Assembly: GCA_963514005.1 (NCBI GenBank)
Contig: OY740806.1
Coordinates: 19,840,001-19,904,000 of the forward strand
Reading direction: 5' to 3'
From: Raja brachyura
Lineage: Eukaryota
DNA length: 64,000 nucleotides
Numbering within the stretch: position 1 is the first letter of the stretch; the number at the start of each line of letters is the position of its first letter. The translations under genes and the position numbers were made by a program. Of this stretch, positions 14,066 to 55,599 are shown in pieces. The notes below the pieces were generated by a model. That model saw only the letters and a list, made by a program, of their open reading frames with translations, ran no database searches and was not told the DNA's origin.

Positions 14066-14114
14066 ATGCAACTCCTCCTGAAGCTGCTCTTCCTCCTGCA
14101 TGCAGGGACACAAG
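14066..14114 (+). CDS. IgSF inhibitory-type receptor, exon 1 (signal peptide MQLLLKLLFLLHAGTQ-G)
   Basis: ATG in aaacATGc context; hydrophobic 16-codon leader; 49-nt phase-1 exon ending AAG|gcaagt (GC donor); joins in frame to the V exon. Confidence 0.85.
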
Positions 14115-14864
14115 GCAAGTTATGTTGATCGGACAATCTGTGGACCAAAGAGCCGTGATGGGGACCATCATTATGTGGCATATTGCATCGATAGATAGTT
14201 AAGGAGCGAGTCTGTTATTAAGACAGCAGGTCGATTAATATCTCTGCTCAAAGGCCGAGAAACCCGTCAAAATATTTAGTCTCCATTTAATCTATATTTT
14301 TAATGTTGGAATAAAAGTTTTGCATCTTCATTGACTGCGATTGCCTGCAATGATTCAATTAGTTAAAGCATTTGAGATATAATTCGGTCACTACAACTCC
14401 ATCAGAGAGCACAAAGCAAGAATCTTACGAAGGTGTAGAAACGAGGAACAGCAGATTCTGGTTTGCAAGAGAAGACACAGAGGCTGGAGCAACTCAGCGG
14501 GTCAGGCAGCATCCATGGAGAACATGGACAGATGGCGTTTCGGGTCGGGCCCCGTTTTCAGACTTTGGAAAGTCATCTCATCCATGTGCTCCAGAGATGC
14601 TGCCTGAGCCGTCGAGTTACTCCAGTCCCTTGTGTCTTTCTAGCGTCCAAAGATCACGGTGTCACCTCCCACCGCATCTGCTGAGAGAAGGCATTTGCAA
14701 CCATAATAGAGGCGAGAATCGTTGTTTGAAAACGTCAGATTTGAATACGTTTCTTTTAAATATTGTTTCCGTTAGAAAACCAATCCCTTGTTCAGTGTGT
14801 AAAGTGGATGTTTATTGAAATACTAACGGGATTATAATTGACAAATGTATTTATTTTCTACCAG

Positions 14865-15212
14865 GAGTTCCGCTAATCTCAAATTTGACCCAGCCACGTC
14901 TGGTCAGTGTGTGGAGGGGCGAGTCCGTCACGTTAAACTGTACATTTACTTATGGTGGAAGTGCGAATGCCTGGCTCCTCGTTTCATGGTATCGGACATC
15001 ACCTGGACGGCCTGATGATACTTACAACACGAACAAATCGCTCTGCATTCCTCACCCCACCAGGAATGGTTTCAAAAACTGCATGGTATCACTGAAGATT
15101 GAAAATGTATCGTTTGGTCACTCTGTTTACAACTACACTTGTGTGGTGAAGGTACCAAATGTCTTCCCTCCAATTCATGAAAAGGGCCAAGGAACACGAA
15201 TACAGGTTTATG
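14865..15212 (+). CDS. IgSF receptor exon 2: VJ-type Ig V domain
   Basis: Branch point tactaac 14821-14827, acceptor ttttctaccag, donor G|gtaaag; GESVTLNC...VSWYR...SLKIENV...YTC...GQGTRIQVY; 66 aa between the B and F cysteines; phase 1/1. Confidence 0.95.
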
Positions 15213-15304
15213 GTAAAGTATTTGCAATACCATGATGATCTCCAGTCTCTGCACTTTATGTTTATGAAATCGATAATGTTAAACGCAGGTACATTTAAAC
15301 CAAG

Positions 15305-15512
15305 GGTACACAAAAAGCTGGAGAAACTCAGCGGGTGCAGCAGCATCTAAGGAGCGAAGGAGATAGGCGACGTTTCGGGTCGAGACCCTTCCTCAGGCCC
15401 GAATCGACCCGAAACGTCGCCTATCTCCTTCGCTCCATAGATGCTGCTGCACCCGCTGAGTTTCTCCAGCTTTTTGTGTGCCCTCGATTCTCCAGCATCT
15501 GCAGTTCCTTCT
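15305..15512. mobile_element. Fold-back element made of inverted Penelope-type terminal repeats; related copies near 3000, 4320, 14440, 15640, 21080, 34430, 45185, 49175, 54390 and 60110
   Basis: aaaagctggagaaactcagcgggtgcagcagcatc ... gatgctgctgcacccgctgagtttctccagctttt inverted arms; the same sequence terminates the Penelope fragment at 56870-57435. Confidence 0.8.
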
Positions 15513-16299
15513 TTAATACATTTAAACCAATCCATTTACAGATACTTTAACAGAAATATTAGCAAGCAGACCCAATTAGAAATAAGATGAAATGAACACA
15601 TTTTGTTTCAACCTAAATGAATAAGGCGTACTTAAGATGACACAAAGGGCTGGAACAATTCAATGGGTCAGGAAGCATCCCTGGAGAACATGGATAGGTG
15701 ACATATCGGGTCTAGACCTTCATCAGACCATGTTCCCCTGAGATGTTGACTGACCCTCTGAGTTACTCCAACACTCTGTCTTGTTTTGTAAACCAGTATC
15801 TACAGTTCCGTGTTTCACAGAGGTACTTCAAGGTTGGTGTTTCCAGCTTTTTTTGGTAAAACACGGCTTGTGATATTGTTGCGTTGTCTCATTTGATCTT
15901 AAATCATATATGGATACCAACAGTGACAATATTCCTCCATTTCTCTTTCTTTTCACTTTCTATTCTGTCCATACCAAAGGATGAGCTGGTTTTACAACAG
16001 TTAAAAAAATAACTCTTTGAGATAGTTTGATTGACTGCATTCAGTGAGGATTCAGTTTGTGATAGATTTCACTCTGGCAATGGAGGAAGGGATGACAGGT
16101 CAGTATGGGAATGGAAATGCAAATTGAAATGGATAGCAATTGGCAGGTCCTTCCCAGAGGGAGCAATGGTGGGTAGATGGGGATGATGCATGGAAGGGAA
16201 CATTTTAAGGGGAGTTCACTTCTTGTACTAAGAATTAATGGAAACAGAACTTAGCCAAGTCAAGCTGTTTATTGTCATTGGCACAAGAACGGTGAGGTA

Positions 16300-17150
16300 C
16301 AGGTGTAACAAAAATCTGCACACAGAAACATAAATTATAAGTAAATTGTTTATAAATCACATAAAATTCTATAAGACAAAAAAATGGAAGAAGACTGTAA
16401 AACGCAATAAGAAAAACAAACAAGTCCATGGTGTTCCATTGTCGTGGGAGGTTTGGGGTTGTGTGGGTTGGTTCAAAAAAGTTGTAGGAAAGTAGTGGTT
16501 TCTGAACCTGGTGGTGTGATACTCTAGGCTTTTACACCTCACCCTATGGTAACAGTGAGAACAGGGCATGGCATGGATGGAGAGATAATAGATGCCACCA
16601 TCTTGAGGCATGTAGGTGGGGAGGCCTGTGGCTGTGATTGCTTGAGCTGAGTATAGCCTCTTGAGTTCCCGTGTTTTGAAATTTCCATACCAGCCCAAGA
16701 TGCAACCAGTCAGAATACTTCCTGCAGTACATCGGTAGAAGTTTCTTTGCATGTTGCATAACCTGCCCAATCTCTTTAAACTTCGAACAAATTAGAGGCA
16801 GTGGCAGATCTTCTTCATGGTTACAGCTATGTGCTCTGCTTACGAGAGGTTATCATCCAGGAATTTGAAGTTGCTAACTCATACCACCATTGACCCAATC
16901 TTAAAAACTGCACATTGTCTCCCGACTTTACCGTTCCAAAGTCAATGGTTAGCTACTTTGTTTTGTTGACCTTGAGTGAGAGTTTGTTGTTGCGGCACCA
17001 CTAACCACTTGTTCCATCTCTCTCTTGCACACTGACTGTTCACCACCCATAATTCAGCTAACAACAATGGTGTCGTTGTTGAGTTTATAGATGGTATTTG
17101 AGCTATGCTTAACCACATAGCTATGGTTGAGAAAGGAGTAGAGTAGGGTG
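16300..17150 (-). mobile_element. Degenerate Rex1/Babar-type LINE 3' fragment
   Basis: NFYRCTAGSILTGCILGWYGN and TTRFRNHYFP motifs. Confidence 0.75.
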
Positions 17151-17546
17151 CTAACGGCTTGGAAATTATATGGCTGCCTTGGTCTCCTTTGTTTGCAACA
17201 AATAAGTCTGAGGAGCAATTAAATTGCAGTGCATTCAATTATGTGAGGTCTCAACACACAAACCAGAAAGGACTTGGATCTCATTGCCTGGAGTAACATA
17301 GAAGCATAGATGTATATTAGCTGGTAGAAGAATTGGGTTGATGTTGTGAACAAATAAATTCACTCAATCAGTGGCAGTGACTGGAACTCATATTCAGAAT
17401 GGGTAAAAGAAGTAGAAATCTTCACCAAATTTCATGTACCTGAATGAGCACTTGAGGTGCATCACCTGCAGGGCTTTGAACTAGAGAAGTGAGAGTAAAT
17501 TAAAAGTATGTCTTAGAGCAGCATGTATTCAATAGATCTCCTACAC

Positions 17547-17781
17547 CAGGGGTTCCCACACTTTTTCGTCCCGTTTACCCCTGGCAACTTTAATAGCACA
17601 TAATAATGTTATTTCACATATTTATGAACAACTAATGAAGAACAGATACCGGTGTGCCAGAACCAAACACAGTCAGTCAATGAGAAAAAATATGTACAAA
17701 ATCCAGAATCAACAAATTTACCCCCTGGGTAGGCGAAATCTACCCCCTGGGGGTAAATTTATCCCAGGTTGGGAACTCTTG
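17547..17781. mobile_element. hAT MITE
   Basis: TIR CAGGGGTTCCCA / TGGGAACTCTTG; perfect 8-bp TSD TCCTACAC. Confidence 0.9.
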
Positions 17782-18169
17782 TCCTACACCATAAATTTCT
17801 ACAATGATTATCATTAACTCAAGCTTCCCCATATTTCAAGAGTTCAAGAGTAATCTCTCACTGAAATGTTTTACTGTGCATTACGAGTATCGTCAATACT
17901 AACCAAAAGACTACGCCATGTGAGTCTGTGTGATATACATAATCTTATTTTGCCAGGACCATGGAGTATATTATAATGGTCCAGCATATATTTGATCCTT
18001 GATGCTTCTCAGCTAAAGAAGTGCTCTATTATTATGATTCTACATCATTAACTTAATATATTCTCTATGAAAATAGGGCAGAATTTTGGACAATTTACTC
18101 TGACAGAGTTTCACTGATATTGAAATGTGTGATATATAGTTTAATACTTTATGCTTTATCTTCTCTCAG

Positions 18170-18460
18170 ATCTTCCAGAAATTTATATACGTGGTGATAC
18201 TTTGGTTGCTGGTCATGAATCCACTCTAACCTGCTCTGGCAAGGGATTGTACGACAAGGATATCTCCTTTACATGGACATGCACTTCTACAAATATCACT
18301 GCACCAACTTTTGAAACAGACAGTAATGGCACACAACTTGCCACCAGTCATTACAAGATTGTCCCAAAAGTGGAAGACAATGGGACTGTTTGCAGTTGTC
18401 AGATTAATCATTCCACTTTTGGACGACCAGCTGTAAATACAATCAAACTAAATATTATGT
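18170..18460 (+). CDS. IgSF receptor exon 3: C1-like Ig domain
   Basis: Acceptor ttctctcag, donor T|gtaagt; TLTCSGKGLYDKDISFTW...DSNGT...CSCQINHSTF; phase 1/1. Confidence 0.95.
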
Positions 18461-18821
18461 GTAAGTATCATCTTTAACTTTTGAAGTGGTATTCACTGTA
18501 TTGCTAATCTTTGAATTCTTGTTGTATGCACATTATGTTTTATCACTTATATTTTCTCTCATTAATATTGTTCTTGGTTTCTTCTATTTTGCCTTTCTCT
18601 CTTGTCCTGTTACTCAGACCGAAAGTTTTAATTCACCTTTCTCAATTGCTTTAAATCAATCTGCCCCAAATACTCTACCTTCTTACTATGATGATTATTT
18701 CCCAGATTTGAATCATTCTCAGTTAAGTTTGAAGCTTCCTTATAGATATCTCTTGGTAATCCTATGTGTGTGTCTCCCCATCTCCACTGAAGCAATCTTA
18801 AAGGCTAAACCTGCTAACCTT

Positions 18822-20552
18822 ATACCTCCCTAAAACTTTTTTTTAAAATCGATTCCATTGTTAACAGCTTTATTTGGGATTATAACAATCACAGAATAAG
18901 TAAAAAACACTTATGTAAATCCAAGATAAACGGAGGATTAGCGTTACCTATTTTTTTATATTATTTTTGGGCGGTTCAGATTAAGAATATGAATTTTTGG
19001 TTGGTAAAAATGGATCAGGAACCAGCTTGGCTAAAGATGGAAAAGGAAGACTGTTTACCGTTTGATACAAGTTCGATTCTTTTTGCTCCAATGGAAGTAC
19101 AAAAAAAAACATATGGGGAAAACCCAATAATTCATAGCAATAGACGTATTTGGAAACAAATAGTTAAGACTTTACATTTGGATAATATGTCGCTTTGTTT
19201 ACCAATTATGAATAATCCCTTATTTAAACCTTCTATATTGGATAAGGGGTTTAGACATTGGAAAAAATTAGGAATTATAAGGATAGAACACCTTTACAGG
19301 AAAGGAAAATTTCTCTCATTTCAAGAGTTAAAAGATATTTATGGATTGCACCCAAATAACTTGTTTAGGTATTTACAAATTAGAGACTATATCAAGTCAA
19401 ACATGCAAGACTATAAGAATAGAGAATCAGGATTACTTGATGAATTGCTTAACAAGCACCCAAATACAGAAAAATTAATAGCATACATATATAATACTCT
19501 TTTGGATAGGGAAGTCCCAACAACAGAATCATACCGACAGATATGGGAAAATGAAATAGGTCTATCTATAATGAAAGACACTTGGGAAGAAAGTTTACAA
19601 CATATACACCGTTGCTTGTTAAATGCCAGACATACCTTGATACAATTTAAAGTATTACATAGATTACACTATTCAAAAACAAAATTAAATAGAATTGTTC
19701 CTAACATCTCTTCTATTTGCGATAAATGTCAGAATTTAGAAGCTAATTTAACGCATAGTTTTGTAACATGCATAAAACTTAATAGTTATTGGGCTGATAT
19801 TTTTAGAATCATTTCTGAAGTTCTTAAAACTAAATTGGACACCGATCTAAAGCTAATAATATTAGGAGTTCCTGATTCAAGCCTAATATTAACAGTAAGT
19901 CAAATAAATTTTCTTGATTACTGTTTGATAATTGGAAAAAAATTAATATTAAAATTCTGGAAGAGAACATTATCCCCCACAATCAAAATGTGGACTGTGG
20001 AAATGTCGGAGACGTTGCATTTTGAGAGAATTAGGTTTGTCCTAATGGACAACTACGAACTGTTTGAACAAATATGGTCTCCATTCATTGATTATTTAAA
20101 GGGGTAGCTGAGCTCAGCATTGTAATTCAATAAGTACCCTGGTGTAGGATTAGATGAAAAGATGTATTCTGGGATTTGTATACACGTCTCTATAGATATT
20201 GTTATGTGAAATAGCTCCATTCATTGCTAAGATGTATACTTCATTTTTTTATTATATAATAATTGTTTTGTTTTTTTTTCTTATTTGTTTATTTTTATAA
20301 TTTTTTATTATTTTTTTTTATTTTTTAAATTTTTCTTATATAATTATAATCATTATTATTTAATCACCATCCGTATTGATTATAGATCTATTATTTTACT
20401 TCTTTACTTCCCAAAAAAAACCAGAAGCATACATACATGATTTCGTAATATTAGTATAATTTTTGAAACAAGTTAAACTTGTATTTGAAGAACTGTTATA
20501 CTGTGGACAATACGCATTGCTTCTAATAAAAATATTAAAAAAAAATAATAAT
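18822..20552 (+). mobile_element. 5'-truncated L1-clade LINE (ORF2 C-terminus, 3'UTR, A-rich tail)
   Basis: 372-aa ORF 18989-20107 with CDKC...H....C motif, preceded in frame by GGLALP; 15-bp TSD AAACCTGCTAACCTT at 18807-18821 and 20553-20567. Confidence 0.93.
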
Positions 20553-21792
20553 AAACCTGCTAACCTTCCTTCTCAATCAGAGTTTTGCGACATTTACAGG
20601 GTGGATCAATATTCATCATCCCTCTCCCTTCCGCATTCATATTCTGTCCTATTTATTTTAGAATTTGAATTTTGCCAAGCCCTCATTGTGCGCGTGTGCA
20701 TTGATAAAAGTATTTCAAGTATAACTGATTGGCCTTCTCCAAACTTCTTGGCTAAGGCCTCACAGAGGTTCTATGTTCCCTTTCACCAAAATTCACTTTC
20801 TTCTGTCCTTATCCATCTCCTGCAACACTTCACCCTTTTGCATTTCTACTTGTTTTGTACTTCATATCTCTCCATTACATTTATGCCAACAAAAGTTGAT
20901 TTTTCTCTCCCAGCTTTTGCAGTGAGTGGTATCTTCTTGTTGCTATTTTCAATGCCCATCTTATGTACCTGTCTTAACCTTAGGTCTTTGAGTTCATAGC
21001 CCTCTGTCCTGCACTAACTTTGTTTTCAATATAAACTCCTCTATTCATGGCCACACCAACAATATTCCCTTCTCATGTGTAGGAAGAAACTGCAGATGTT
21101 GATTTAAACCGAAGATAGACACAAAATGCTGGAGTAACTCAGCCGGAGAAGGGTCTCGACGCAAAGCATCACTCATTCCCTCTCCAGAGATGCTGCCTGT
21201 CCCGCTGAGTTACTCTAGCATTTTGTGTCTACCTTCCCTTCACAAGTGGCCCTACTACTCTCACCATATGCAGGGGTATCTGTGATCATTTGTGGTATCC
21301 GTAGAAATCACTTACAACGCCACACCCACCTGTGTTCCGACAGGTGAAGAAAATCACCAAAGAATTATATTAGTGGCTTCACTCTTCAAACTGTTAGGAA
21401 TTTGGACCTCCATTTGCCACGTTTACCAAACACTTCATCTCTCTACTACCAGCAGTATAACCCTCGAACAATTCTAAATTTCTCCAGAAGTAATGTCGAA
21501 GAATCTCAACTTTCATCGTGCAAATGGTTCATTAAGCTCTAGCATTCACCTTCCTCTCTGCATCAATCCCTCACTCTCCATAGACAAGAACAAGCTTGGC
21601 TTTTTGTTACGTATCTGATTCTTTCCAACTTTGCTTCAGTGGCAGTCCGAGTTATACTCAGGTCCCTTGAAAATGATTAGCTTTCAGAAGTGCAATGTTT
21701 GATTGTGAATAGCTGTTCTGTGTATACTTCCATGTTAATTCTTTTCACATTGCTTTCATCTAAAATGAAGTGTACATTATCTTTACCATTAG

Positions 21793-22110
21793 ATGGACCA
21801 CAAGATCTATTAATAACATACAGGTTGAAAGCAGTGGATATTTATCGACCGATCAATAATAGCATCATCTTTGTTGCTGCTGATTCATTCCTGGAACTGA
21901 ATTGTCGTGTAGATAGTAATCCGGTCTCCATTGTTACCTGGACAAAGGCCACGGAGAATCATAATGTAACGTTGCAAACTGGAGTCGGGTTCAACAGTTC
22001 AAAAGAATGGACCCGTTTCCAGCGTAAAGATGAAGGAATGTATTGGTGCATGGCAAAAAACAGCTACGGCTGGAGAAACAGAAGTATCTCGATAAACACA
22101 AAACAGAAAG
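21793..22110 (+). CDS. IgSF receptor exon 4: I/C2-set Ig domain
   Basis: Acceptor ccattag, donor G|gtaaat; YGP...LELNCRVDSNP...VTW...DEGMYWCMAKNSYG; phase 1/1. Confidence 0.95.
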
Positions 22111-22519
22111 GTAAATAGAAATGTAATTATACATGTGCCTAAGTAACAATGTTCATTGAGGTAGAATCATTCTTAGCAAATAAGACCTCAACTTAATTAG
22201 TTCAATGTCTTTTTTCTTGATCTTAGTGATTGATCAATTGTAATATTTTAATTATTTTACAAATCATATATAGTAAAGACCATTTACTGCTGTCATCTTC
22301 AAATGCTTTGATTTTATAGTGTTTTTCCATTGTAGATTAAAAAAAATTAAACATTAGAGTGCTGCAGTTTTGTTTATTAATGGCAGTGTATCTCTTCTGG
22401 AATTGAAATAAATATATGTAAAACAAATAAAGTAAAACGATTGCAGTGTTTTTTTTTAAACTTTTTATGTCTCTCAGTGCTGTCGACATTTAGTTGACAT
22501 CTGGAATTTTCTTTCACAG

Positions 22520-22618
22520 ATTATTCTTTTCTTTATGCTCTGGTCCTGGTCCCCCTAACTACTGCCATTATTTTCGCAATGATATATGTTTGTCTGAACT
22601 GCAAGAGGCAACGGAAAG
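22520..22618 (+). CDS. IgSF receptor exon 5: transmembrane segment (DYSFLYALVLVPLTTAIIFAMIYVCLNCKRQRK)
   Basis: Acceptor ttttctttcacag, donor G|gtaaaa; uncharged hydrophobic stretch followed by basic stop-transfer residues; 99 nt, phase 1/1; too short for the ORF track. Confidence 0.92.
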
Positions 22619-22869
22619 GTAAAACTGAAAATAAAGCGTTGGTTGTAGGTGTTAACCTTAAAACGACAACAATAGCCAGCTGAAAAATAATGTGGTTTTC
22701 AATCAATCGTGTTATTACACAATCCTTTTTGATATCCTGTGTGTTGCTTGTTGGGTTAATTTCATGGCCAAGCCTTTATTTGGTTAAATAAGTGTTACAT
22801 TTCAAGTTAGAGGATCATGAAAGACCTTGTTCAATATTTTCCAGCAATGCCCTGATCTCAAAAATGAAT

Positions 22870-23175
22870 TTAGTTTAGTTTAACGATACAGCGTGGAAAC
22901 AGGCCCTTCAGCCCATCGAGACAGTACTGGACAATGATCACCCTTACACTAGTTCTGTTATTCCACTTTCGCATCCTACACACTGGGGGGAAATTACAGA
23001 GGCCAATTAACCTACGACTTTGGAATGTGGGAAGAAACCAGAGCACCAGGAGAAAACCCATGCGGTCACAGGGAGAATGTACAAACTCCATACAGATAGA
23101 ACCCGTAGTTAGGATTAAACCCGGGTCTCTGGTGCAGCAAGTCAGTAATTCTATGGCTGTGCCACTCTGCTGCCC
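22870..23175 (-). mobile_element. tRNA-derived SINE; related copies near 32553-32815(-), 35122-35435(+), 39495-39690(+), 56430-56595(-) and 61070-61325(-)
   Basis: A/B-box-like head, shared core (ggtttcctcccacattcc) and (CTAAA)n tail. Confidence 0.8.
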
Positions 23176-24679
23176 TAATTGAAAATAATATTATTTATTA
23201 ATTCATAGAAAAACACCAAACTTGGCAAGGCATTTTCAAAATTGGAATCAGGAACTAAATTACAAAAGATGCAAATGTTTTTAATATGATTAGTATTTTG
23301 AAGTAGTGCAGGTATTTTGAGTGAGTTTTTTTTAAAAATAAAAATTAAGACTTTTTATGGGAAATATTTAAATTAGATAAAGAGATGCACCAAATGTAGA
23401 AAAACAAGTAGTTCAACTATGTTCTGTTTTGCATTCTAGAGACATTGATTTGATTTTGTACTATTCTTTGAGTCTCTACGAGTCTTTCAAATGCATTGAC
23501 CATTATAATAGAAAAGGAAATGATCTTGAACTTGTTTGACCTACTGAAGTTAGGGAGGAATTTTGTACAGGAAATTCATTTCTGGAAAAAGTGCAGCATG
23601 AATGCTCCACAAAGCCACCAGGATGTGGAATTATTCACTAAGAGACTTGAAAAGACTCAAGTCTATTTAGTTAACTCTGCAACGGTTAAAAGGATGAAAG
23701 GGCAAGTTGAATAATGAGAGAGTGACATAACATTTCACAAAGGGAGCAGCAAGAAAGTTTTGAAATGAAATTCGTTGAGAGTAAATTTAGAAAAAAAGTC
23801 TAATTCTCTGTTTGCTATTAACAGTTTATGATGACTTCGAAAATAATTTAGTTGTTTGGAAAAAAGAAACCTTTAAATACAGCAGGTAGCAAAAATGCTG
23901 GAGAAACTCAGCAGGTAGGGCAGCATCTATGGAGAGAAGGAATAGGCGACGTTTTGGGTTGAGACACTTCTTCAGACTGATAATACAGCAGCGTGAGCCT
24001 GGATAATGTGGAACCAATTGGATTAATTGGATTTGATTGGACTTTTTCATGCCGTATATGATTCACGATATTAGGCTGCGTGACAGCTTATCTGCCCCTC
24101 AGCTTATTAAATCAATATGTGAAATTGAAGTTTGAATGCCATCAATACCAATGGAATATTTTTCCTGCTGTGAATCTTATGATTGGCGTTTCTTTATTTG
24201 TCACTGCTTTGCTATTTCTTTTCACTTGCTTCGCTCAAGGATAAAGTGCACCCTCCCCCATGCATTTCCTGTTCAAGAGTGCATTGGAATCACCCAAAAA
24301 AAATCCTCAAGACAGCGGAATGCCTTGGCTTCCACTGCAGTACATTTCTAGTGCAACGTACAGGCCTTTGTTAACCAAAGCGTAATGTGTTCTGACCACT
24401 ACGTCTCCGAATTTCTCATTACCCAGATCTTTGCAACTTGAATGTACAGTAATATCTCACCACAACTATAGACCTGAAAATTTAAACATGCAGATTTCTG
24501 AAAAAATAAAATGCTGCTTTACAAAACCAGGCCACGTTTAGAGGAAATTGGGTCTGAAATACACCCACTTTGATGTGGGAAGGAATCTATCGATGCTAAT
24601 CCATTCTGGGCACTGTGCAAGAGAGAATATTTAGCATATGTAATTTGGGAATTTTGTTAATTGCTGCAAGTTTGACCTG

Positions 24680-25015
24680 GGCCGGGATAGAGTGGATGTG
24701 GAGAGGATGTTTCCACTAGTCGGAGAATCTAGGACCAGAGGTTATAGGCTCAGAATTAAAGTATGGTCCTTTAGGAAGGAGATGAGGAGGAATTTCATTG
24801 AGCGTGGTATATCTGTGGAATTTATTCCCACAGAGGGCTGGGGAGGTCAGTTCAGTGGATATTTTTAAGGCAGAGATAGATAGATTCTTGATTAGTACGG
24901 GTGTCAGGAGTTATTGGAAGAAGGCAGGAGAATGGGGTTAGGAAGCAGAGATGAATCGACCATGATTGAATGTCAGAATGGCCTAATTCTGCTCCTTTCA
25001 CTTATGACCTTATGA
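24680..25015 (+). mobile_element. CR1 LINE 3' fragment
   Basis: Degenerate ORF2 end and 3'UTR. Confidence 0.75.
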
Positions 25016-27991: not shown

Positions 27992-30900
27992 TAATACTCC
28001 CAGTATATTAAGCATTTAAAAAGCCTCTATGATATTCTCAGTGTATTTTGTAACATTTTTACAATGGTCGGGTTTTTCTTCCTGAATTGCTGCCACTGGT
28101 GTTCAGCATGGAAACATGATGATAATTATCTTTCAAGATATATTAAATTGTACAATTGATGACTGCATAATCTGATTTGCTACTGCAGATTGAATGAGGA
28201 AACAAAACCTTTTGCTGTTAGTTAGTTTGTAGCGCATGGTTTTGTGATTTCATCTCAGCAGGAAGTCTATATGTAATGTTTCCTCTGCTTATGGCAACAA
28301 GGCAGCATGCACAGAGTTACACTGAAGTATCGAGCGGCACTGGGGTCCGCAGAAGGACTTCTCACATCCAGTGTTATAAGGATGAAACCATTATCAAGCA
28401 GGCCAATTATGACTTTACAAATAATTAACAAGGAATTATACATGCTACTGCTGAAGATAATACTCAAATAAGGCTTGGTCTGCCCGTTCCACAAGTTCAG
28501 ACAGTATTAAAGATTTGGTAATCCTATTTTAAAGTGTTATAGATTCATGCAGCACGGAAACAGACCCTTCGGCCCAACTTGCCCATGCCAACCAAGATGC
28601 CCCATCTTCACGTCCCACCTGCCCATGTTTGGCTCTCTAAACCTTTCCTATCCATATACATATTTGCTGTGTGTTGTGTAAAGCATTGCACTGTCAATGA
28701 CAACATAAGTGTTATTGGATGAATGTCTTGGTTTGTCTTAAGCATTCCTGTGAGTTACTCCAGCACTTTGTGCCCTTTTGTGTAAACCAACGTCCGCAAT
28801 CCCTTGTTTTACACTGAAAATTCTGCTGGAGTGGACTTGGAAGGACCCAAGATACAGTAGAAAGGCAGATGTGGGAAGCAGAGGGCTGCTGAGTGACTGT
28901 CAATACAAACTGATAGTTAAAAAAGTTGCTTGGGTGGAATACTTGTTCTAGTTTGCATTAGGTACTGAAGATGGTAAAAACATTACTCACTCTCTGAGCA
29001 ATCACCTCTGCTGGTTGGGCTAATTGCTTACTGATATTGTGAAGTGCCTTTCGACATTTTGTACTACAATGAATAATCGAACGATTTCCTGGCAGTGCAC
29101 CAAAATAGTAATAATTCGTCAAACTGCCTTGTGGTGGACTAAAGAACATATCATTATGCATTATTATGTTCTGTGTGAAATTATACTTACTTTACTTAAT
29201 CTCTTTAAATGAAGAACAAACAATTATCGTAGCCATTTGCTGCATAATCTACACACATGTTTATGACACTCCCAAGTTTGGGTGCAATACTTTTGTCAGA
29301 GAATTGGGCACAGTATTATGGTTCTTAACATGTTAATTAAATGATAACTCCTGAATACTCTGAGCTCTATGTTATTCTAGTTACAACCAAAGCATTAAAG
29401 ACAGCTGGACAAGTCCCTAGGGAAAAGTACTTTCAAATTAACTCATTTTTGATTAAATCTTATCTGTTGCCTTCATAATTTTATATTACCTGCATGGGTG
29501 CAGTCAACCATCATATCCTTGTTTCACTTCCCTCTTAAACCAGCGAAGACTCAGCTATACTGAGTTGTAGGAGTCGTTTTGTGACAAGTCAGCTGTGCAA
29601 GTGTTTCTCCGTGTTTGCTGAACCCATGTGATGCTCTACATCTACATATTCAGTCAAACGGAGGACACATGGATTTGAGTCAGATAAGACAGTGACCCCA
29701 GCAATGAGTCAATGCAACTCATTATCTTGGCCCGGGCATCATGAACAGATACTTCATGATACATGAAAGCCATTATCAAGCACAATCATCTAGCAGGATA
29801 GCAGTGAAGACTATTTTTAGAAGCATTGTTATATTATTGTGGTCTAAAGCAGCCTTTAGTAGGAATTGTAACAAATTGGTGCTCTATTGACAAAATTAAT
29901 TCTGGCAATAAACATAACTTAAAAAAACGATGGAAAAGATGGACTGCAAAGCTAAAATATAATTACTATGGTAATTAAAGTACATTTGAACCTAACATTT
30001 TGATAATTTAATATATAGGCCTGGCTGAATATTTTTTAATTTTTTGGGCTCCGTTTTTGTTTTAGTGATTGTCCCAATATTCATCCTTGCTGCATGCGCA
30101 CCTGTGTTGGAGATTTATACTTTAAAACTGGCATTCGATGCACACTAAGATAAAGCCGTTGGTTTGGATCTGAATAACCTAGAACAGAGAACCTTCTACA
30201 GTGAAAAGCTCCAAGAAAGTTGGGAATAAGTGTTCATTCTAATGTTATAATCATGTTATAGGAGTAATCCAAAAACCTATTGGATACAGATTTTTAGATC
30301 TAGAGGCCATTGAGTTTAGTTTAGTTTATTGGTTATTGTCATGTGTACCGAGGTACAGTGAAAAGCTCATGTGGCCTGCTAACCAGTCAGCAGAAAGACA
30401 ATACGTGATTACAATCGAACCATCCACAGTGTTATCCAAATGTTATATACTTGGACTGATGATTGGACTGCAGAAGTACAAAGGGCAGTTTTGTGGAACA
30501 CTCCTAAATTGCCTCTGTGACGTACAAGATTGTTATTGATTCTTTATGCCCAACAAAGTCCATTTGCAGAATATACGGACAAATACTCTTGATCCTCAAG
30601 AAGACCAAGGTGCAAACTTTTTACTCAAGGGTTTCTCAAGGAATTCCTCTCTGAAATTCACTACGGATATCATTACAGCCCAGAGAGCAGTTAATCACAT
30701 GGCACAACCGTTGGTAGTCTAAAGTAACATATATTGTTCATTGTCAATAATATACACACTTCATCCTGAGATGTGAATCTGTGTAACTTTATCGGAATGG
30801 AATCTGGATTTCCCAATTTTTACGAGAAGTGAGGGAGCAAACTAGTACTGAATTAATTAAAACTGTAGAAGATGCAGGTTGACATTCCCTTTCGTGTTGA

Positions 30901-31093: not shown

Positions 31094-31121
31094 ATCCAGT
31101 CAATGTGACCATTGAGCTGAG
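31094..31121 (+). CDS. IgSF receptor exon 6 (cytoplasmic, DPVNVTIEL)
   Basis: Very strong polypyrimidine acceptor (T-run, ttcctttccccag), donor GAG|gtaaga; 28 nt, phase 1/2. Confidence 0.72.
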
Positions 31122-32485: not shown

Positions 32486-32529
32486 TCCTGAAAACATGCA
32501 CAGGGATGCAAACTGCAACAAGGAGTTAG
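32486..32529 (+). CDS. IgSF receptor exon 7 (cytoplasmic, SPENMHRDANCNKEL)
   Basis: Long pyrimidine tract with aag acceptor, donor TAG|gtatgt; 44 nt, phase 2/1, restores the frame together with exon 6. Confidence 0.68.
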
Positions 32530-35500: not shown

Positions 35501-35749
35501 ATGGGGAAGATAGGTATTAAGCAGATACACGTACATTGATTTTTGTTTTTTTGCGCAGTAGGTGGATGAATAAATGTGGTCTACTATGTGGTATGAAATA
35601 TAGTCACAGCATCATATAGCATGGTAACAACCCTTTTGCCCTACTTGCCCATGACAACTGAAGTGCCCCGGCTACACTAGTCCCACCTGCCTGCATTTGC
35701 CCCATATATGTCGACCTTCCCTATCCATGTACAAGTTCAAATACCTATT

Positions 35750-36706
35750 AATGATTTAGATGAGGAATTAAAAGTAACATTAGCAAATTTGCAGATGACA
35801 CATAGCTGGGTGGCAGTGTGACTGTGAGGAGGATGCTATGAGGATGCAGGTTGACTTGGATAGGTTAGGTAAGTGGGCAGATTCAGTATAATGTGGATAC
35901 ATGTGAGGTTGTCCACTTTGGTGGCAAGAACAAGAAGGCAGGTTATTATCTGAATGGTGTCAGATTAGGAAAATGGGAAGTGCAATGAGACCTGGGTGTT
36001 CTTGTACATCAGCCAATGAAAGTAAGCATGCAGGTGCAGCAGGCAGTAAAGAATGCAAATGGCATGTTGGCCTTCGTAATGAGATTTGAGTACAGGAACA
36101 AATAGGTGTTTTTGCAGTTGTATAGGGCCCTGGTGAGACCACACCTGGAGTATTGTGTGCAGTTTTGGTCCCCTAATTTGAGGAAGGACATTCTTGCTAT
36201 TGAGGGAGTGCAGCGCAGGTTTACAAGGTTAATTCCCGGGATGGCAGGACTGTCATATGATGAAAGAATGGAACAACTGGGCTTATATTCACTGGAAATT
36301 AGAAGGATGAGAGGGGATCTCATAGAAACATATAAAATTATTAAGAGATTGGACATGTTAGACGCAGGAAACATGTTCCCGATGTTGGGGAAGTCCAGAA
36401 CCAGGGGCTACAGTTTAAGAATAAGGGGTGGGCCATTTAGAACTGAGACGAGGAAAAACATTTTCAACCAGAGAGTTGTGAATTTGTGGAATTCTCTGCC
36501 ACAGAAGGCAGTGGAGGCTGACTCACTGGATTAATTCAAAAGAGAGTTAGATAGAGCTCATAGGGCTAGCAGAATCAAGGGATATGGGGCGAAGGCAGGA
36601 ATGGGGTACTGAACGTGGATGATCAGCCACGATCACATTGAATGGCAGTGCTGGCTCGAAGGGCCAAATGGCCTACTCCTGCACCTATTTTCTATGTAAC
36701 TATGCA
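35750..36706 (+). mobile_element. CR1 LINE 3' fragment, about 950 bp including the end of RT
   Basis: KFADDT, LYRALVRPHLEYCVQFWSP and RVVNLWNSLP motifs. Confidence 0.9.
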
Positions 36707-38526
36707 TGTCTCTTAAATGTTGTTCTTGTATTTCCTCAACTACCTTCTGTGGCAGCTTGTTCCATTTATTCGCCAGCCTCCATGCCTCAAAGATTCCTAT
36801 TAAATCTATCCCTCACGCCTTAAATCTATGTCCTCTGGTTCTTGATTCCCCTACTTTTTGGATAAAAAGAAACTCTGTGCATCTACCCTGTCTATTCCAT
36901 ATTGATTTATCTTGAATTTGCATCTCTGAGCAAAGTGAGTGCGGTGAAAGTCCTCTCTGGGAAGCTCAAATAATCACAAGGATAAAAGCTGCTGCTGCTC
37001 TGGTGCTTCCTGCAAAGGCGGAGTGCGATGATTGACACAGTGAAACCTGCGACCAGATTAAATCATTCAAATTCCCCCAAAAGTTTGATCATCCCTTCTT
37101 TGCTACATATTTTCAAGAGGGTTCCTATTTGCACATTCAGCATCATCAGCAATAGAATATTCACATCTGCAAAACATGTACAAGTCTACCTTGCACGTTT
37201 TGAGGCTACAAAGCCGCTCGGCCTTGTATTTTTCACAGAACAGTATATTAAATTAGTTGCCAGAATCTCTTTACTGAGAACACTACAGCATGCTTTATAG
37301 TGAAGTAGTTACTTTCATTCTAAGCATGCATTACAAGCCACCAAATATGCAACCACCTGCTTTTTCAAATGCCAGACATATATCAATGTAAACAGCACCT
37401 TTATTCAGAGAATCAGTAAGATAAGCCTTTAGACACGATAACAAACGTCAAGACACAACGGTTATTACTACATCCCCAGTAGTGGTGTCAGAGCTACATT
37501 CAATTCTGAATATCATTTGTGGTTAAAAAAGCACAATGTAGCGATACTGCAATTTTAGGTCAAGGGAAGGATATGACAATAAAGCTCTGTGTTTGATGCG
37601 GATAATTCTCAGCAGGGGCTGTCAGAGTGTGGATCAACTAACTACAGCTATGGTCAAGAGGGAAAAAATTAAATACTCAGAACTTATGATCCTAAATACT
37701 AATTATTTATAGAATGATATAGCACAGAAACAGGCCTTTCACTTGCAGAGGCCAATCAGACCATTGTACCTGTCTATACTTAGCCCCATTTGCTAGCACT
37801 CAATCCGTATTTTTTTCGGAATAAAAACAAAAGTTGTTAACGAAAGTAGTGTGGAATCAGGAACAAAGACACAAAACATGTCAAAAATTGTACATATGGA
37901 TGTATTACCACAACAGAACTTTGAGCCAAATCACGCTCTGCTTTTTTTTGTAGTTCAGTAGAAAACTTCCAAAGACAACCTCCTTATAGTTCAGCTGATC
38001 TCGGAGGCAAATCAGAGGTCAGATACCAAAACATTTAAACCTCCTTTCCTCAATGGACTAATCAACTGGTGGTGAAATGCTTGATTGTTATTACTAAAAT
38101 ATCCACATTCATATTAATGAGGTCACCATCACTGAATATAAATGAAATTGTTAGTATGTGGTTAACTTATTTTTCTTCATTTACCATGTCTAAAACTTCA
38201 AGGTGCTTTTAATTAATTTTATATTCTACTTTAAATAATTGTTATATTTTTTTAAATGTTTTAAACCTTTTCAAGCTGCTTTTCATGTTCTCAGAGGCAT
38301 TGAGAATCAGCTTGAAATGTCCTCTAAATTGTATCTAGAGGTTAGTGTAGACAGGTGAGGACCTTTGGCAGTAAGTTCAGGCACTGGGTCAAAACTCGAA
38401 TAGCATCGGCCAATATCCAAGCATGGCTGAGACTGATCAACTTGTACTCTGTGGACTTGTGCCAGGGAATATTAATGGTAGGCATATTGTTTCAGTTGGT
38501 AGCACTCAAAACAGATTATAGAAGTA

Positions 38527-38731
38527 CAGGCACCTCGCGTTTTATGCATGTTTGATTTATGTGTTTTTGAAATAACGCACGTGTTTAATTAATACCAATA
38601 TCAAATTTATGCGCTGTATTTTTTAAATATTGCGTTAAAAGTTACACATGTTTAAATGTATTCATTTAATTTATGCATCTTTGAATTACATGCTCCAGGA
38701 GCGTAACCCCTGCGTAAAGTTTAAAATACTG
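38527..38731. mobile_element. Possible Tc1/mariner (Tigger-like) MITE remnant
   Basis: TA followed by CAGGCACCTCG at the left end; internal ttatgcg/taacgc repeats; right TIR degenerate. Confidence 0.4.
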
Positions 38732-38862
38732 AAACAGCCTTACCGATCTTCGCTACTATTTATTCCTCACACTTAGCTCCTCCCATCCTTATCTAAACTA
38801 TCCAGATGCTAGATGAGTTTATTATTACTTCTGATATTCATGCATTCTGATTTGTTTGGCAG

Positions 38863-38922
38863 ATACAATATATGCAGTGGTCAGGAAGAATGGTCCACCA
38901 ATCAGCAGACCGTTTTCAACAG
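38863..38922 (+). CDS. IgSF receptor exon 8 (ITSM: DTIYAVVRKNGPPISRPFST)
   Basis: Acceptor tttgtttggcag, donor CAG|gtaaga; TxYxxV motif; 60 nt, phase 1/1. Confidence 0.88.
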
Positions 38923-39000
38923 GTAAGATAAAATTCAGGGACCTAAACTTCTTCCATATATTCCGATAAATGCTTCACATGGTCATTCTTTTCCCCACAG

Positions 39001-39098
39001 AGGTTGCTTTTGTTAATGAAGGGAACAGTGAAGAAGAAGTCTCCTATGCGGACATTGTTATCCACAGTCCAAAACAACGCTACAACCAAAAATCTAAG
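39001..39098 (+). CDS. IgSF receptor exon 9 (ITIM: ...EEEVSYADIVIH...)
   Basis: 78-nt intron, acceptor ttttccccacag, donor AAG|gtattg; VxYxxI preceded by acidic residues; phase 1/0. Confidence 0.9.
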
Positions 39099-39125
39099 GT
39101 ATTGATAATTGCCTCAGAGTATCTA

Positions 39126-39402
39126 GGTCATTTAAGACTGAGATGAGAAAAAAACTTTTTACCCAGAGAGTTGTGAATTCATGGAATTCCCTGCCACGTA
39201 GGGCAGTGGAGGCCAAATCACTGGATGGATTTAAGAGAGAGTTGGATAGAGCTCTAGGGCTAGTGGAGTCAAGGGATATGGGGAGAAGGCAGGCACGGGT
39301 TATTGATAGAGGACGATCAGCCATGATCACAATGAATGGCGGTGTTGGCTCGAGGGGCTGAATGGCCTCCTCCTGCACCTATTTTCTATGTTTCTATGTT
39401 TC
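39126..39402 (+). mobile_element. CR1 LINE 3' fragment just downstream of exon 9
   Basis: FTQRVVNSWNSLP motif; close match to 10857-11130. Confidence 0.88.
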
Positions 39403-41160
39403 TAGAAAGCCCCCTTGTTTATTTATCCTTGATGTATCTTAAATTCCAGGACACTCATAGCTATATCCCCGGAGAGGAATTATATCCAACCAAGTACACA
39501 TTTCCCTGTGGCCGCAGAGGTTTTCTCTGTTTGTTTCAGTTTCCTCGCACATTCCAAAGACATGTAGGTTAAATGGCTTCTGCAAAATTGGCCCTCGGGT
39601 GTTTGATAGAACTAATGTATGATGCATCACAGGTCAACAGAGACTCGATGTGCCAAAGGGCCTGCTTCCACACTATGTCTCTAAACTAAACTCAATCCTT
39701 TTGCTTTTGGCATAGATGTAAAAACTGTTGATTGATTCACATTGCCTTGTTTTAGTGACAACACTATCCTGCCCCATAATTGACATTATAACTTTAGAAA
39801 GCTCCTTTAGCATAATAAAATGTTCCAAAGGTGGTTCATTATCAAACAGGATTTGCCACTGAACACCAAAATAATCTTAAAACAGATCACCAAATTTGGT
39901 CAAAGAAGTCGGATTAGGAAGGTGAAGTAGGAAAATAAAGCGATTTAGAGAGTGGATAGTTGTTCTGACGGTTTAATCAGCTGAAAAATACAGCACGCAA
40001 TAATGGAAAAAATAACCAAGATAAAAGTTAGATGTGAGCAGATAATGATGTGGGCTCAAAACAGATAATGCTGGAAATACTCAGCAGAACATGCAGCATC
40101 TGCGGAAAGAGAAACCGTCAAGGTTTCAGGTCGGAGACCTCATGTCAGAACAGTTGTAAAATTGACGTTGCATTATTTTAGCGGCCCCACCATCCCGTCG
40201 TAACCCACAGAACAACTTTGCAAAGCTCCCTTAGCCCAGTAGGATGCCTCAAAGTGGGTCGTTGGAAAGCTTTCAAGCAGAACAGTTTCCATTTTCTCAA
40301 ATGTTGCCCGACCGACTGAGGGAAGGGTCTCGACCCGAAACGTCACCCATTCCTTCTCTCCAGAGATGCTGCCTGTCCTGCTGAATTACTCCACCTTTTT
40401 GTGTATATCGTCGGTTTAAACTAGCATCCGCAGTTCCTTCTCACACATTTCCTGTTTTTACTTTAGTTTTCCAGCATTTGCAGTTTTTTTTTACTACCTC
40501 TGTGGTCTGCAGGCCTGGCAGAGATGGAAAGGAATAGGGCAGGTTGAGGCTTTGAGGAGAGGGTGTGGCTTCAAAACAAAAGTGACTATTTTAAAATTCA
40601 GCCATTGCTTAACCAAGAGTTATTGGTTTGCAGCAAGAACGTGTATGATGGCTGAACAATAATCAGTGTGAGTTAAAATGTGAGTTTAGTAGCGAGTTGT
40701 CTTGGGTATACAGGGATGAGATTGTGGGAGATGAGACCCGAGTGCCTGTGGTGGTAAAGCATCAGTAACAGATGAACTGAGGCATAGGCCATGTTTGACA
40801 ATATAGCAGAAGTAGAAATAGTCAGTCCGAGGGTTTGCTGTGTGGTTGGAGACATGGCTGTGCTTGGACTCTGATATATTAATATTCATCGATGTACTGA
40901 TCAACCACATTCCTTGGCAGATAGCACATGATCCTTCAAACTTCAAAAAATATTTTCATATTTTCTTAAAACACAGATGGAGGCCATTCAGCCCATCACG
41001 TCTCTGCCAGCTCTCAGCACAATCCAATCACTCACTACCCCATTCATTTTTCTGTAACCGATTCTCTGGTAATTTAACTCCTTCCCCCCTCCACTCACCT
41101 CACAACTATGTCAGATGCACTGCACAGGAGCCAATAACATTATAAACCTATACATCTTTA

Positions 41161-42193
41161 TAGCAATGTTACAAAATTTTGAGATTTAAAAAATCAAGTC
41201 TGCAATTTATCCCATCAAATAAAGCATAAAAAGAAGTTTAATTTGACACCTAATTTACTTTCATATCTTCAGTATTAAGAAAGTTATGGCCATTTTCATA
41301 CTCAGAAATTAGCATCTTGCTCCCCATTGCCTTTCAATTGACGTAACTCAAAAGCTGTGATCTGGAAAAGTTAAAAGCCCATAACTTTCTTAAAAATTAA
41401 GAGAACTCAATGAAATTTTCAGTTATTATAGATTGAAGCATTCTGAAACAAATATGAAACAATCTTACTTGCATGACCTGAAATGAAAGCATATAATTAG
41501 TTAGTTATCTAATTGTAGCTAATTACAAAATTCAATGAGTAGATCTAAACATCTATCCATTTCTTAAGAAAAGATAAACTTTTTTTAAATTGCCTAAGTA
41601 TCCAAATAACATTCACACAATAATCCACAATATAACATAATTTTTAAATTTCATTTTCATGAATTTCTGGGCCAAATGGAAGGAATTTAGTGTTTGATTC
41701 CTGTAAATTAATGGCCATTTAAATCAACTAGCGAGTGGGTTTTAGTGGAATGCGGTGGATTGGAACGTTGCGGTTAGCGGTGGTCGGGAGGAAAAATATT
41801 GTTTGTTCATAGATTTTTTGGGACCCCATTTCGCAACATAAAAATATTATTAAAGACTCCCGAAAGAACAAATTTTAATATAAAAATAAACTATTTACCT
41901 TTTCTTCTCCCCTACGCAAACTTCTTCCGGTTGTCGGCGCTCACGGCTTTTGAAGGTGATTTTTAAATTACTCTAGTTAATAAATAATTTAGAGTAATTT
42001 AAAAATACCTTCATTCATGAAATGTCGGAGCGATTTTTCTTCCGCAACCAAATCGCCCGACATTCATCGATTTGTCCTGCCTGTTGAAAAACGGCACTTT
42101 AAGCCCGCCCCCCCTCTGAAAGGCGCCAAAGTCGCGCACATGGGGAGCGGCAGAACTGCAGCGCCGCTAAAGGTAAGTTTTGCAACATACCTA
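41161..42193. mobile_element. Non-autonomous DNA transposon (1033 bp) inserted into a SINE
   Basis: Imperfect TIR TAGCAATGTTACAAAA / TTTTGCAACATACCTA; direct repeat ATCTTTA on both sides; SINE sequence resumes after 42200. Confidence 0.75.
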
Positions 42194-43823
42194 ATCTTTA
42201 GGATGCGGGAAGAAACCAGAGCAGATGTAGGAATCCTCATGGTCACATGGAGTATTAACAGATTCCACCCAGTCAAAGACCACAGTTCAGGTTTGAGCCA
42301 GATCATTGGAGCTGTGAGACAGCTGTACTGACTACAGTGCCACTATGCCATCCTAGCGTATATGTTTAATACACAGAACATTTCCCATCATTGATCTTTG
42401 ATGCTCCAAATTTAGTTTTGAGCTGAAGTGGAAACGGATGTCAGTGACTTCAGTGTCAACATTATGGTAATATTTTTCCTAATGTACATAGAACAGTACC
42501 ACCCAGGGACAGATATGTCGGCCCACAAAGTACTTGCCAAGCACGATGTTAAGTTTATCAAATCTCCCTTGCCTGCACATCATCCATATCTCTCAATTCC
42601 TTGCAAAACCATGTGCTGATCTAGCTGCCACTATTGTATCTGTTAACATATTTAATGCTAGTCTTGTATCTAATACAGAACCTGAATATAGCTCTCCACA
42701 TAATGATCTCAAATCATCGTAACATTCCTAACAGTTCAAATTTAACTGATTTGAATAAAAATCTGTTTATTTCTAACTGAAAATAAATGAGATAGTCTCC
42801 ATGCCATTTAGCGGATATGTCCTGTTAGTATTTGACATTCCAAAATACATTAATACCCCTCTGTATTAAACCCATCGTCCACTCCTCTACCCAATTTCCC
42901 AACTAATCAACGGTGTTCCGTTTTCTTTCACAACCCTCTTCATTATCTATTATTCCATTAATTTTTGTGTCGTCAACAAGTTTACTAATCAGTCCACCTA
43001 CTTTCTCATCTAAAGATAGCCACAAAATGCTCAGTGTGTCAAACAATATCTTTTGGGATCACACTGTCCCAAGCCAACAATTGGTCTATCAGGAACCATC
43101 CTGCCTGAGGTCATCTGTTGCCTTCCCTGATTTGCCTTTTCGCCTTTTCTTGCTTCCTGCTCTCCCCACCCCCACCACCCCCATACAATCAGTCTGAAGA
43201 AGGGTCCCGACTTGAAACATCACATCAATTTTCTCCAGAGATGCTGCCTGACCTGCTGAGTTCCTCCAGCATTTTGTGTCTATCGTTGTTATAAACCAGC
43301 ATCTGCAGTTCCTTTTTATTACTTTCTCATCCAAGTCATTTACAATGCCATTCACCACTGAAAAATGGAAAAATATCCCTCAACTACTGTTATCATTTAA
43401 ACTAGAAAATATCGCAAAATAGTAAGACTTTTTCAACATATTACAAGATGGTCTTCTATTACTATGATAGCCTTTGCTAACTAACATCCACGCAGGCATT
43501 ATTTATAGACATTTCCAGGTAATGTATGAATCATCAGGAAAATCACAGATAATATGGAAAGTGCTCATGTGCCAACCACTGTGTTTTTCACAAATCTAAA
43601 TATAATATAATATAAATTGTACATAAATATAAAATTGCTGATTTGATTTAAACCAGTTGGCTCAAAGGAGTGGATAATTCAATTTCCATTCCACAAGGTA
43701 CATTTTGTTAGTTTCCTCTATCCACAGTTACTGCCTGACCGAAACATTTCCAGTAATCTTGATTTTATTCCACTTGCGCTCGGCATGTGATAGTGATTAT
43801 TCTTCATTTTTGTGTTCATTCAG

Positions 43824-43961
43824 CAAATTTGTGACGTAATGGACAAAAATGCCAAAAAACAGTTACCGTATGGTTACAGTTCATCTCCTCTCCACCATGT
43901 TGATGATACATCTGAATATTCTGTGGTGCGAATGTCACGCCAAGACTTGAGGACTGTGTGA
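43824..43961 (+). CDS. IgSF receptor exon 10, last coding exon (ITIM: ...DDTSEYSVVRMSRQDLRTV*)
   Basis: Acceptor tttttgtgttcattcag; phase 0 fits exon 9; SxYxxV near the C-terminus; TGA at 43959-43961. Confidence 0.85.
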   Translation, partial: QICDVMDKNAKKQLPYGYSSSPLHHVDDTSEYSVVRMSRQDLRTV

Positions 43962-46745: not shown

Positions 46746-46775
46746 GGACAATTTTCTCACAACACACTTCCATCC

Positions 46776-55590: not shown

Positions 55591-55599
55591 TCTCCTGTT

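Follow-up and report, generated by a model that had tools for sequence, protein, structure and literature searches.

A probable inhibitory-type receptor gene of the skate Raja brachyura, joining VJ-type, C1-set and Siglec-like immunoglobulin domains within an unnamed family

Introduction

Inhibitory receptors of the immunoglobulin (Ig) superfamily are well known, and the systems closest to the gene reported here are found among the SIRPs, with a V-C1-C1 ectodomain, the nectin/Necl/PVR proteins, with a V-C-C ectodomain, the Ig lambda light chains, the Siglecs and the UrIg genes. In the crystal structures of the Siglecs CD22 and MAG, the first three domains are of V, C1 and C2 type, and sialic acid is bound through an arginine on strand F, namely R118 in MAG and R120 in CD22 (PMC5624926, PMC5150538). 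UrIg and UrIg2, which are retained in no vertebrates except elasmobranchs, have a VJ exon and, after it, constant domains exclusively of C1 type (numbering nine in nurse shark UrIg2) and are linked to the major histocompatibility complex or the antigen-receptor complex; neither immunoreceptor tyrosine-based inhibitory motifs (ITIMs) nor an I-set domain are mentioned for them (PMC12227049). Here, a window of 64,000 nt of Raja brachyura was analysed (contig OY740806.1 of assembly GCA_963514005.1, 19,840,001-19,904,000; all positions below are those of the window). It contains a ten-exon gene that probably encodes a 490-residue type I inhibitory-type receptor, the skate orthologue within an unnamed family of paired inhibitory/activating design. 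A first-pass annotation, made from the letters alone, had set the gene against Siglecs composed of a V domain plus C2 domains only, a contrast that is outdated given the domain order of CD22 and MAG.

Exon structure and transcripts

Each exon was matched by tblastn of database orthologues against the window, and the similarity searches were queried with single window exons or natural database proteins. The ten plus-strand exons, spanning 14066-43961, fit one open frame. Their lengths sum to 1473 nt, equivalent to 490 uninterrupted codons and a terminal TGA, and the successive junctions have the mutually compatible phases 1, 1, 1, 1, 1, 2, 1, 1 and 0. The ten phase-compatible exons and 490-aa open frame of the first-pass annotation were thereby confirmed; the gene is real and intact, and a chance origin of the exon set is implausible. 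All acceptors are AG and all donors GT, save that of intron 1, which was assigned as GC (AAG/GCAAGT, 14115-14116) because the frame of exon 2 and the continuation of the leader in Rhinoraja and Leucoraja demand a GC junction. A GT donor for this intron (GGCAA/GT) was rejected, as it has the wrong phase and breaks the frame, GC alone yielding the phase-1 junction for exon 2. Exon 1 lies outside the read-mapped stretch, and the GC donor rests on the frame and on the orthologue leaders. The 28-nt exon 6 was located by a motif scan with AG and GT flanks and corresponds to DPVNVTIEL of the Leucoraja protein. For the tail exons, an ab initio scan of splice sites and open reading frames (ORFs) returned 34 candidates and was undecided, and the tail was settled via orthologue homology. 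No paralogous exons were detected within the window by tblastn of the four main exons.

Transcript contigs of four runs (X1-X4) were compared with window positions 16700-22699. In record 16 of X3 (2109 nt), letters 428-719 lie on 18169-18460 and letters 720-1035 on 21793-22108, and record 9 of X2 (880 nt) shows the identical 18460>21793 join. This join, present in contigs of two runs, is the splice between exons 3 and 4. Ahead of exon 3, the X3 record has 427 letters, a length that would accommodate exons 1 and 2 (397 nt) together with a short 5' untranslated region. Exon bins were covered, including that of exon 5 (22500-22699, in four of four runs), and depth was 0 in the unique intron bins 17100-17499, 17900-18099, 18500-18699 and 20500-20899. 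Taken together, the empty intron bins and the spliced contigs therefore indicate that what the runs contain of this locus is processed transcript, as opposed to genomic DNA. The contigs are approximately 3% divergent from the window across the mapped exons and hence derive from a close relative or a divergent individual. As to the spliced transcripts that the proposed gene presupposed, one junction was thus observed, and the other eight were derived from phase, splice signals and homology.

The stretch directly upstream of exon 4 (21500-21699) is also covered by contigs of X2-X4, at depths of 4.7-6.4, and not by those of X1. It could be a retained intron end, a longer alternative exon 4 or an unrelated piece.

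Ectodomain analysis

Exon 1 (14066-14114) provides the start codon, the signal peptide MQLLLKLLFLLHAGTQ and the first base of a Gly codon, in a leader register identical to that of Rhinoraja and Leucoraja. Exon 2 (14865-15212) encodes the first domain, D1, which scores as Pfam V-set at 5.9e-9 and closes with the germline-joined, J-like GQGTRIQVY (GQGT, 15185-15196). Its framework region 1 reads LTQP..., and it has the antigen-receptor-type WY...PG plus GxGT pattern. In a PDB search, the best 60 matches were all antibody V regions, lambda wherever the chain type was given, with the top match at 2e-9. The end of the domain, EKGQGTRIQVY, lies within the V exon, and the profile aligns kGqgTrlqv to FGTGTKVTV of lambda J. 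D1 is accordingly best described, as far as its sequence tells, as a germline VJ-type domain without the Phe/Trp of antigen-receptor J segments; the unrearranged VJ domain postulated earlier is borne out by this single-exon V with its J-like GQGT. The domain has the B and F cysteines together with an extra cysteine pair, and C42, C77, C89 and C109 are invariant in family alignment A1.

The second domain, D2, is encoded by exon 3 (18170-18460), the end of which is spliced to 21793 in the contigs. It matches Pfam C1-set at 7.9e-7 with 29.8 bits (cut-off 21), versus 16.6 for C2-set_2. Among relatives, C1-set scored above the cut-off in 10 of 10 and exceeded C2-set_2 in 9 of 10, and D2 of paddlefish and bowfin reached 65 bits on C1-set. 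The PDB matches of D2 were constant domains of IgA and IgG, SIRP-gamma D3 and UrIg2. The C1-like assignment of the first-pass annotation therefore stands, D2 being far from clearly non-C1.

Exon 4 (21793-22110), for which contigs were present in all four runs, encodes the third domain, D3, of I-set/C2 type, which begins with a YGPQD linker and contains CRVDSNP...YWCMAKNSYG. It scored on Pfam Ig_3 (8.8e-10), I-set (7.6e-7) and also ig, and had no match to C1-set in the Pfam scan. Its best single-domain PDB matches were MAG Ig3 (25.8 bits) and Siglec-8 (25 bits), followed by generic I-set proteins such as contactin, in line with the Siglec-like membrane-proximal domain that had been proposed.

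At the level of the fold, the predicted model of the Leucoraja orthologue, whose ectodomain has predicted local distance difference test (pLDDT) values mostly of 75-94, is roughly as similar to MAG Ig1-3 as to nectins, CD22 and SIRPs (Foldseek 1.5e-16 to 3e-13; VIA Z 16.0-12.7). The fold searches with Foldseek and VIA could not tell apart MAG, CD22, nectin, SIRP and other three-Ig proteins.

Membrane anchor and signalling motifs

Exon 5 (22520-22618), found by a hydrophobicity scan and by tblastn of orthologues, encodes a transmembrane (TM) helix without a charged residue, followed by the stop-transfer sequence KRQRK. The cytoplasmic tail of approximately 125 residues continues through exon 6 (31094-31121), which encodes (D)PVNVTIEL in passing from phase 1 to phase 2 and has the counterparts DPVNVTIEL in Leucoraja and DPVNVS.E in sharks, and exon 7 (32486-32529), encoding SPENMHRDANCNKEL, which was obtained by tblastn of the Rhinoraja protein P0056 and reading of the splice sites. 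Exon 8 (38863-38922), obtained by tblastn of P0056, P0003 and P0005, contains TIYAVV (38865-38882), a motif of the immunoreceptor tyrosine-based switch motif (ITSM) type, TxYxxV. The two ITIM-pattern motifs reside in exons 9 and 10, both likewise found by tblastn: exon 9 (39001-39098) encodes an acidic run and then VSYADI (39039-39056), and exon 10 (43824-43961), with 82.6% identity to P0056, encodes SEYSVV (43911-43928), the C-terminus QDLRTV and the stop TGA (43959-43961).

All three tyrosine motifs are kept in nearly all full-tail orthologues, one model diverging at the C-terminus. The exon 8 motif column D[TI][IV]YA.V is kept from chimaera to skates. EEVSYADIVIH is kept across the aligned elasmobranch orthologues with one substituted form (EEVPYADIVIY in Heterodontus), and Callorhinchus has NEVSYADIMI. 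In exon 10, DDTSEYS[VA][VI]R and QDLRT[VA] are conserved in the family alignment. The complete set of Callorhinchus motifs reads TIYAEV, VSYADI and TEYAAV. The product is thus a type I protein with an uncharged TM segment and at least one conserved cytoplasmic (S/I/V/L)xYxx(I/V/L) motif, which places it in the functional class of ITIM-bearing inhibitory Ig-superfamily receptors and agrees with the tyrosine-motif inhibitory or switch tail read from the letters alone.

Orthologues, paralogues and database names

A HMMER scan with the V exon retrieved six close proteins and, beyond them, only light-chain arrays and multi-V proteins. The remoter matches, from teleosts, lamprey, turtle and cattle, were rejected as family members, being multi-V proteins without a C1-set domain. 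Searches with database orthologues and with a family profile recovered the same layout and tail in Leucoraja erinacea, Rhinoraja, Mobula, Narcine, Hypanus, eight shark genera and Callorhinchus milii. The Leucoraja erinacea protein also has 490 aa, of which 432/490 are identical to the product of the window. The gene tree mostly tracks the species tree, which is what a single old orthologue group should produce, with Callorhinchus on a long branch and unresolved. From these comparisons, the gene is taken to be the skate orthologue of a mostly single-copy gene of skates, rays, sharks and chimaera, and its retention in these lineages implies an age of more than 400 million years.

Copy number and architecture vary in some species. 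Rhinoraja longicauda has two copies (P0001/P0056), approximately 96% identical, on one contig, of which one carries the full ITIM tail and the other a short one, and the Hemiscyllium ocellatum model P0070 (610 aa) has its V domain in tandem duplicate. Sharks have paralogues with an Arg in the TM helix (e.g. WIFIVRSISVAAFIL) and almost no tail, namely P0083 of Scyliorhinus canicula and P0078 and P0004 of Pristiophorus japonicus; no copy of this Arg-TM type was found within the window. In paddlefish, sturgeon, gar and bowfin there are V-C1-I relatives whose tails are short and whose membrane segment is of a related type, R..V..P.F, so that the restriction to cartilaginous fishes suggested by the first-pass annotation does not hold. 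No teleost or tetrapod member was found within the limits of these searches.

The gene had also been called possibly undescribed. This holds insofar as no published description of the family was found in the literature on SIRPs, Siglecs and VJ-C1 receptors in cartilaginous fish, and fails insofar as orthologues from more than 15 species are already among the NCBI predictions, with Siglec-, MAG- or SIRP-like names. These database names are automatic and inconsistent, and include Siglec-6/8/12/13/14, MAG-like, sialoadhesin-like, SIRP-alpha-like and HMCN2; the paddlefish and sturgeon relatives are labelled SIRP-alpha-like.

Comparison with described families

Many of the automatic names point to the Siglecs, and the gene could be read as a true but divergent Siglec of CD22/MAG type that binds sialic acid through its V domain. 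The skate gene shares the classical layout of a V domain, a C1-type second domain and a C2-type third domain, and a single alignment of the family profile runs through D2 and D3 against MAG Ig2-Ig3, linker L.V.Y.P included (52.4 bits, independent E-value 2.7e-13); given this alignment and the domain order of CD22 and MAG, the layout has a precedent. The alignment of Siglec-8 to the family profile likewise spans D2-D3, the first half of D1 aligns weakly to MAG V (11.9 bits), and the leading fold matches include MAG Ig1-3 and CD22 d1-d3 (Foldseek 1.5e-16 and 7.5e-15; VIA Z 16.0 and 13.7, respectively). The tail carries several ITIMs, as does that of CD22. The V domain, however, argues otherwise. 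No Siglec figures among the 60 best PDB matches of the V exon, all of them antibody V regions, and MAG is absent from the best 60 matches of a profile restricted to V-C1. The residue following the F-strand cysteine, which we take to be the position of the sialic-acid-binding arginine on the basis of the canonical D.(A/G).Y.C pattern and not of a structural alignment, is V in the window and A, E, I, V, T or K in 16 aligned relatives, never R. Siglecs have an intrasheet B-E disulfide instead of the B-F bond, and a cysteine joining V to the second domain; here, both canonical cysteines, B (LNCTF) and F (YTCVV), occur in every member aligned, the GxGT J motif is kept, and the region just ahead of strand B lacks the additional N-terminal cysteine that a V-D2 bond would need. 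C89 of the extra pair, in the context NC.VSL, presumably resembles the Siglec strand-E cysteine. Further, the skate receptor has three Ig domains, unlike CD22 and MAG with five to seven, and its D2 is nearer in sequence to the C1 domains of antigen receptors and SIRPs than to MAG Ig2. Overall, D3 and the D2-D3 junction appear to lean to the Siglecs, D1 is by all these signs not a Siglec V, and we regard descent as a genuine CD22/MAG-type Siglec as quite unlikely.

The V-C1 portion brings in the SIRPs, of which the gene might be the fish representative with the third domain swapped for a C2/I-set exon. The V-C1-only profile aligned contiguously with SIRP-alpha D1-D2 at 48.5 bits, D2 also matched SIRP-alpha D3 (41.4 bits) and SIRP-gamma D3, and SIRP-gamma was a fold match with VIA Z 14.4 and a root-mean-square deviation (rmsd) of 5.4. 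As in SIRPs, a non-rearranging VJ-like V domain is followed by a true C1-set domain within a three-domain ectodomain, and an ITIM-bearing form coexists with charged-TM, short-tail paralogues, comparable with SIRP-alpha and SIRP-beta. The SIRP-alpha-like names of the paddlefish and sturgeon relatives agree with this reading, and VSYADI and SEYSVV presumably resemble motifs of the SIRP-alpha tail. Against it, the same profile scored 52.0 bits on Ig lambda and 46.3 on UrIg2, so that no affinity specific to SIRPs is apparent, and D3, which scores only on Ig_3, I-set and ig, is of I-set/C2 type instead of the C1 type of a SIRP third domain. We therefore deem a fish SIRP an unlikely identity for the gene.

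By these scores, the V-C1 unit seems to be a generic module of antigen-receptor/SIRP type, with much the same distance to Ig lambda, SIRP-alpha and UrIg2, and the special relevance to the evolution of VJ-C1 receptors before RAG that had been ascribed to it was not upheld. The Ig lambda light chain offers the best sequence match for both the V exon and the V-C1 unit; unlike it, the skate gene has no V-J split or rearrangement and its product is membrane-anchored, with a third domain, a signalling tail and the extra V cysteine pair. With UrIg/UrIg2 it shares a single-exon VJ followed by C1-set in a non-rearranging gene kept in elasmobranchs, and UrIg2 C3 matches D2 at 38.6 bits. It differs from them in having one C1 domain followed by one I-set domain and an ITIM tail, and in belonging to a family that extends to chimaera and ray-finned fishes.

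A further candidate is an adhesion molecule of the nectin/PVR/Necl type, with a V-C-C ectodomain and PVR-like ITIM signalling, PVR also carrying an ITIM. Nectin-3, nectin-1, Necl-4 and CD155 match the ectodomain fold as well as MAG or SIRP do (Foldseek 1.8e-15 to 2.5e-12; VIA Z 15.0-13.8) and with the lowest rmsd (4.9-7.9), a likeness of overall three-Ig shape that is common to many three-Ig proteins, and D2 also scores on the CD80-like C2-set_2 in most relatives. Yet no nectin, Necl, PVR or CD96 chain is present among the best 60 PDB sequence matches of the exons or profiles, C1-set outscores C2-set_2 in 9 of 10 members, and the V pattern, with WY...PG and GxGT, is that of antigen receptors. 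Membership of the nectin group is thus most improbable. By the comparisons above, none of the Siglec, SIRP, UrIg or nectin families accommodates the gene fully, each having one or more defining features that it lacks; the first-pass annotation had rightly found no clean fit to Siglecs, SIRPs or nectins.

Functional interpretation

An inhibitory receptor that recruits SH2 phosphatases, and that is paired in sharks with activating-type Arg-TM partners, is the most likely function to be proposed from the predicted protein. In such a mechanism, the V domain would bind a ligand, with the C1 and C2 domains holding it off the membrane. Src-family kinases would phosphorylate the tail tyrosines, and the phosphotyrosines would then recruit SHP-1/SHP-2 and possibly, at the ITSM, SAP-type adaptors. 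The recruited phosphatases would damp activating signals. Expression in immune cells, the nature of the ligand, the recruitment of phosphatases and the pairing of the Arg-TM paralogues with an adaptor are what we infer from the protein and its relatives.

Several points weigh against an inhibitory-type immune receptor. Only the junction between exons 3 and 4 was seen directly, and for the other eight the support comes from phase, splice signals and similarity to predicted proteins. The contigs carry no tissue or cell type, and the RNA nature of the runs is a guess. The conserved C-terminus QDLRT(V/A), which ends in RTV in the skate, could instead be a ligand of PDZ domains with a role in scaffolding, and non-immune adhesion molecules also have ITIM-like motifs. 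With these points considered, the type I inhibitory-type receptor of a paired, unnamed family remains the reading that we favour as probable.

A broader evolutionary proposal is more tentative and, in our estimate, doubtful though conceivable. The gene may represent an ancient paired-receptor family of jawed vertebrates, with a germline VJ domain, a true C1 domain and a Siglec-type C2 domain in ITIM and Arg-TM forms, that has persisted solely in cartilaginous fishes and non-teleost ray-finned fishes and stands between the SIRP/antigen-receptor VJ-C1 lineage and the CD22/MAG Siglecs. If so, the family would be a relative of the ancestor whose V domain was remodelled into the Siglec V, or an old exon-shuffling product of both lineages.

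Introns, repeats and flanking regions

Within intron 5, the plus-strand stretch 28816-28860 is open, looks like coding sequence and reads ENSAGVDLEGPKIQ followed by a stop; 12 of its 14 residues are those with which P0001, the short Rhinoraja protein of 380 aa, ends. It was rejected as a short-tail terminal exon, having TG where the junction needs AG, and was excluded from the gene. Most probably, the stretch is either an alternative terminal exon that is no longer functional or simply a conserved piece of intron.

Intron 3 contains a 372-aa plus-strand ORF (18989-20107) with a weak zf-RVT match (E 0.0037, below the cut-off) and many diverged contigs of high depth, which is probably the tail of a retroelement of the long interspersed nuclear element (LINE) type, outside the receptor gene. 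A short repeat in the same intron (21075-21235), with a similar core at ~15360-15390, has a summed contig depth of more than 500,000 across all four runs, many internal joints and the loose-end consensus ...GGTCTCGACCCGAAACGTCACC..., and has no counterpart in Rfam. Its appearance is that of a very abundant element of the short interspersed nuclear element (SINE) kind. No Rfam families were detected in 13000-45000 as a whole. ORFs of the LYRALVRPHLEYCVQFWSP-type repeat are present at 7291-7665 and 36106-36534, with no Pfam match, and the flanks (1-14000 and 44000-64000) contain only repeat-derived ORFs and no recognisable neighbour gene.

Implications

The gene is already in public annotation and, inhibitory Ig-superfamily receptors being familiar, adds no new type of system. 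The novelty lies in recognising a single conserved orthologue group in which an antigen-receptor-like VJ-C1 unit is combined with a Siglec-like membrane-proximal domain and an inhibitory tail of three tyrosine motifs, along with the activating-type partners of this group in sharks. Anyone tallying the Siglecs or SIRPs of early vertebrates would be misled by the inconsistent labels that members of the group now carry. Should a link to the SIRPs or to CD22/MAG emerge from synteny or per-domain trees, the family would help to explain how both families, and their C1-type second domains, relate to each other. To comparative immunologists, the gene would offer an inhibitory receptor of sharks and skates that is tractable and mostly single-copy.

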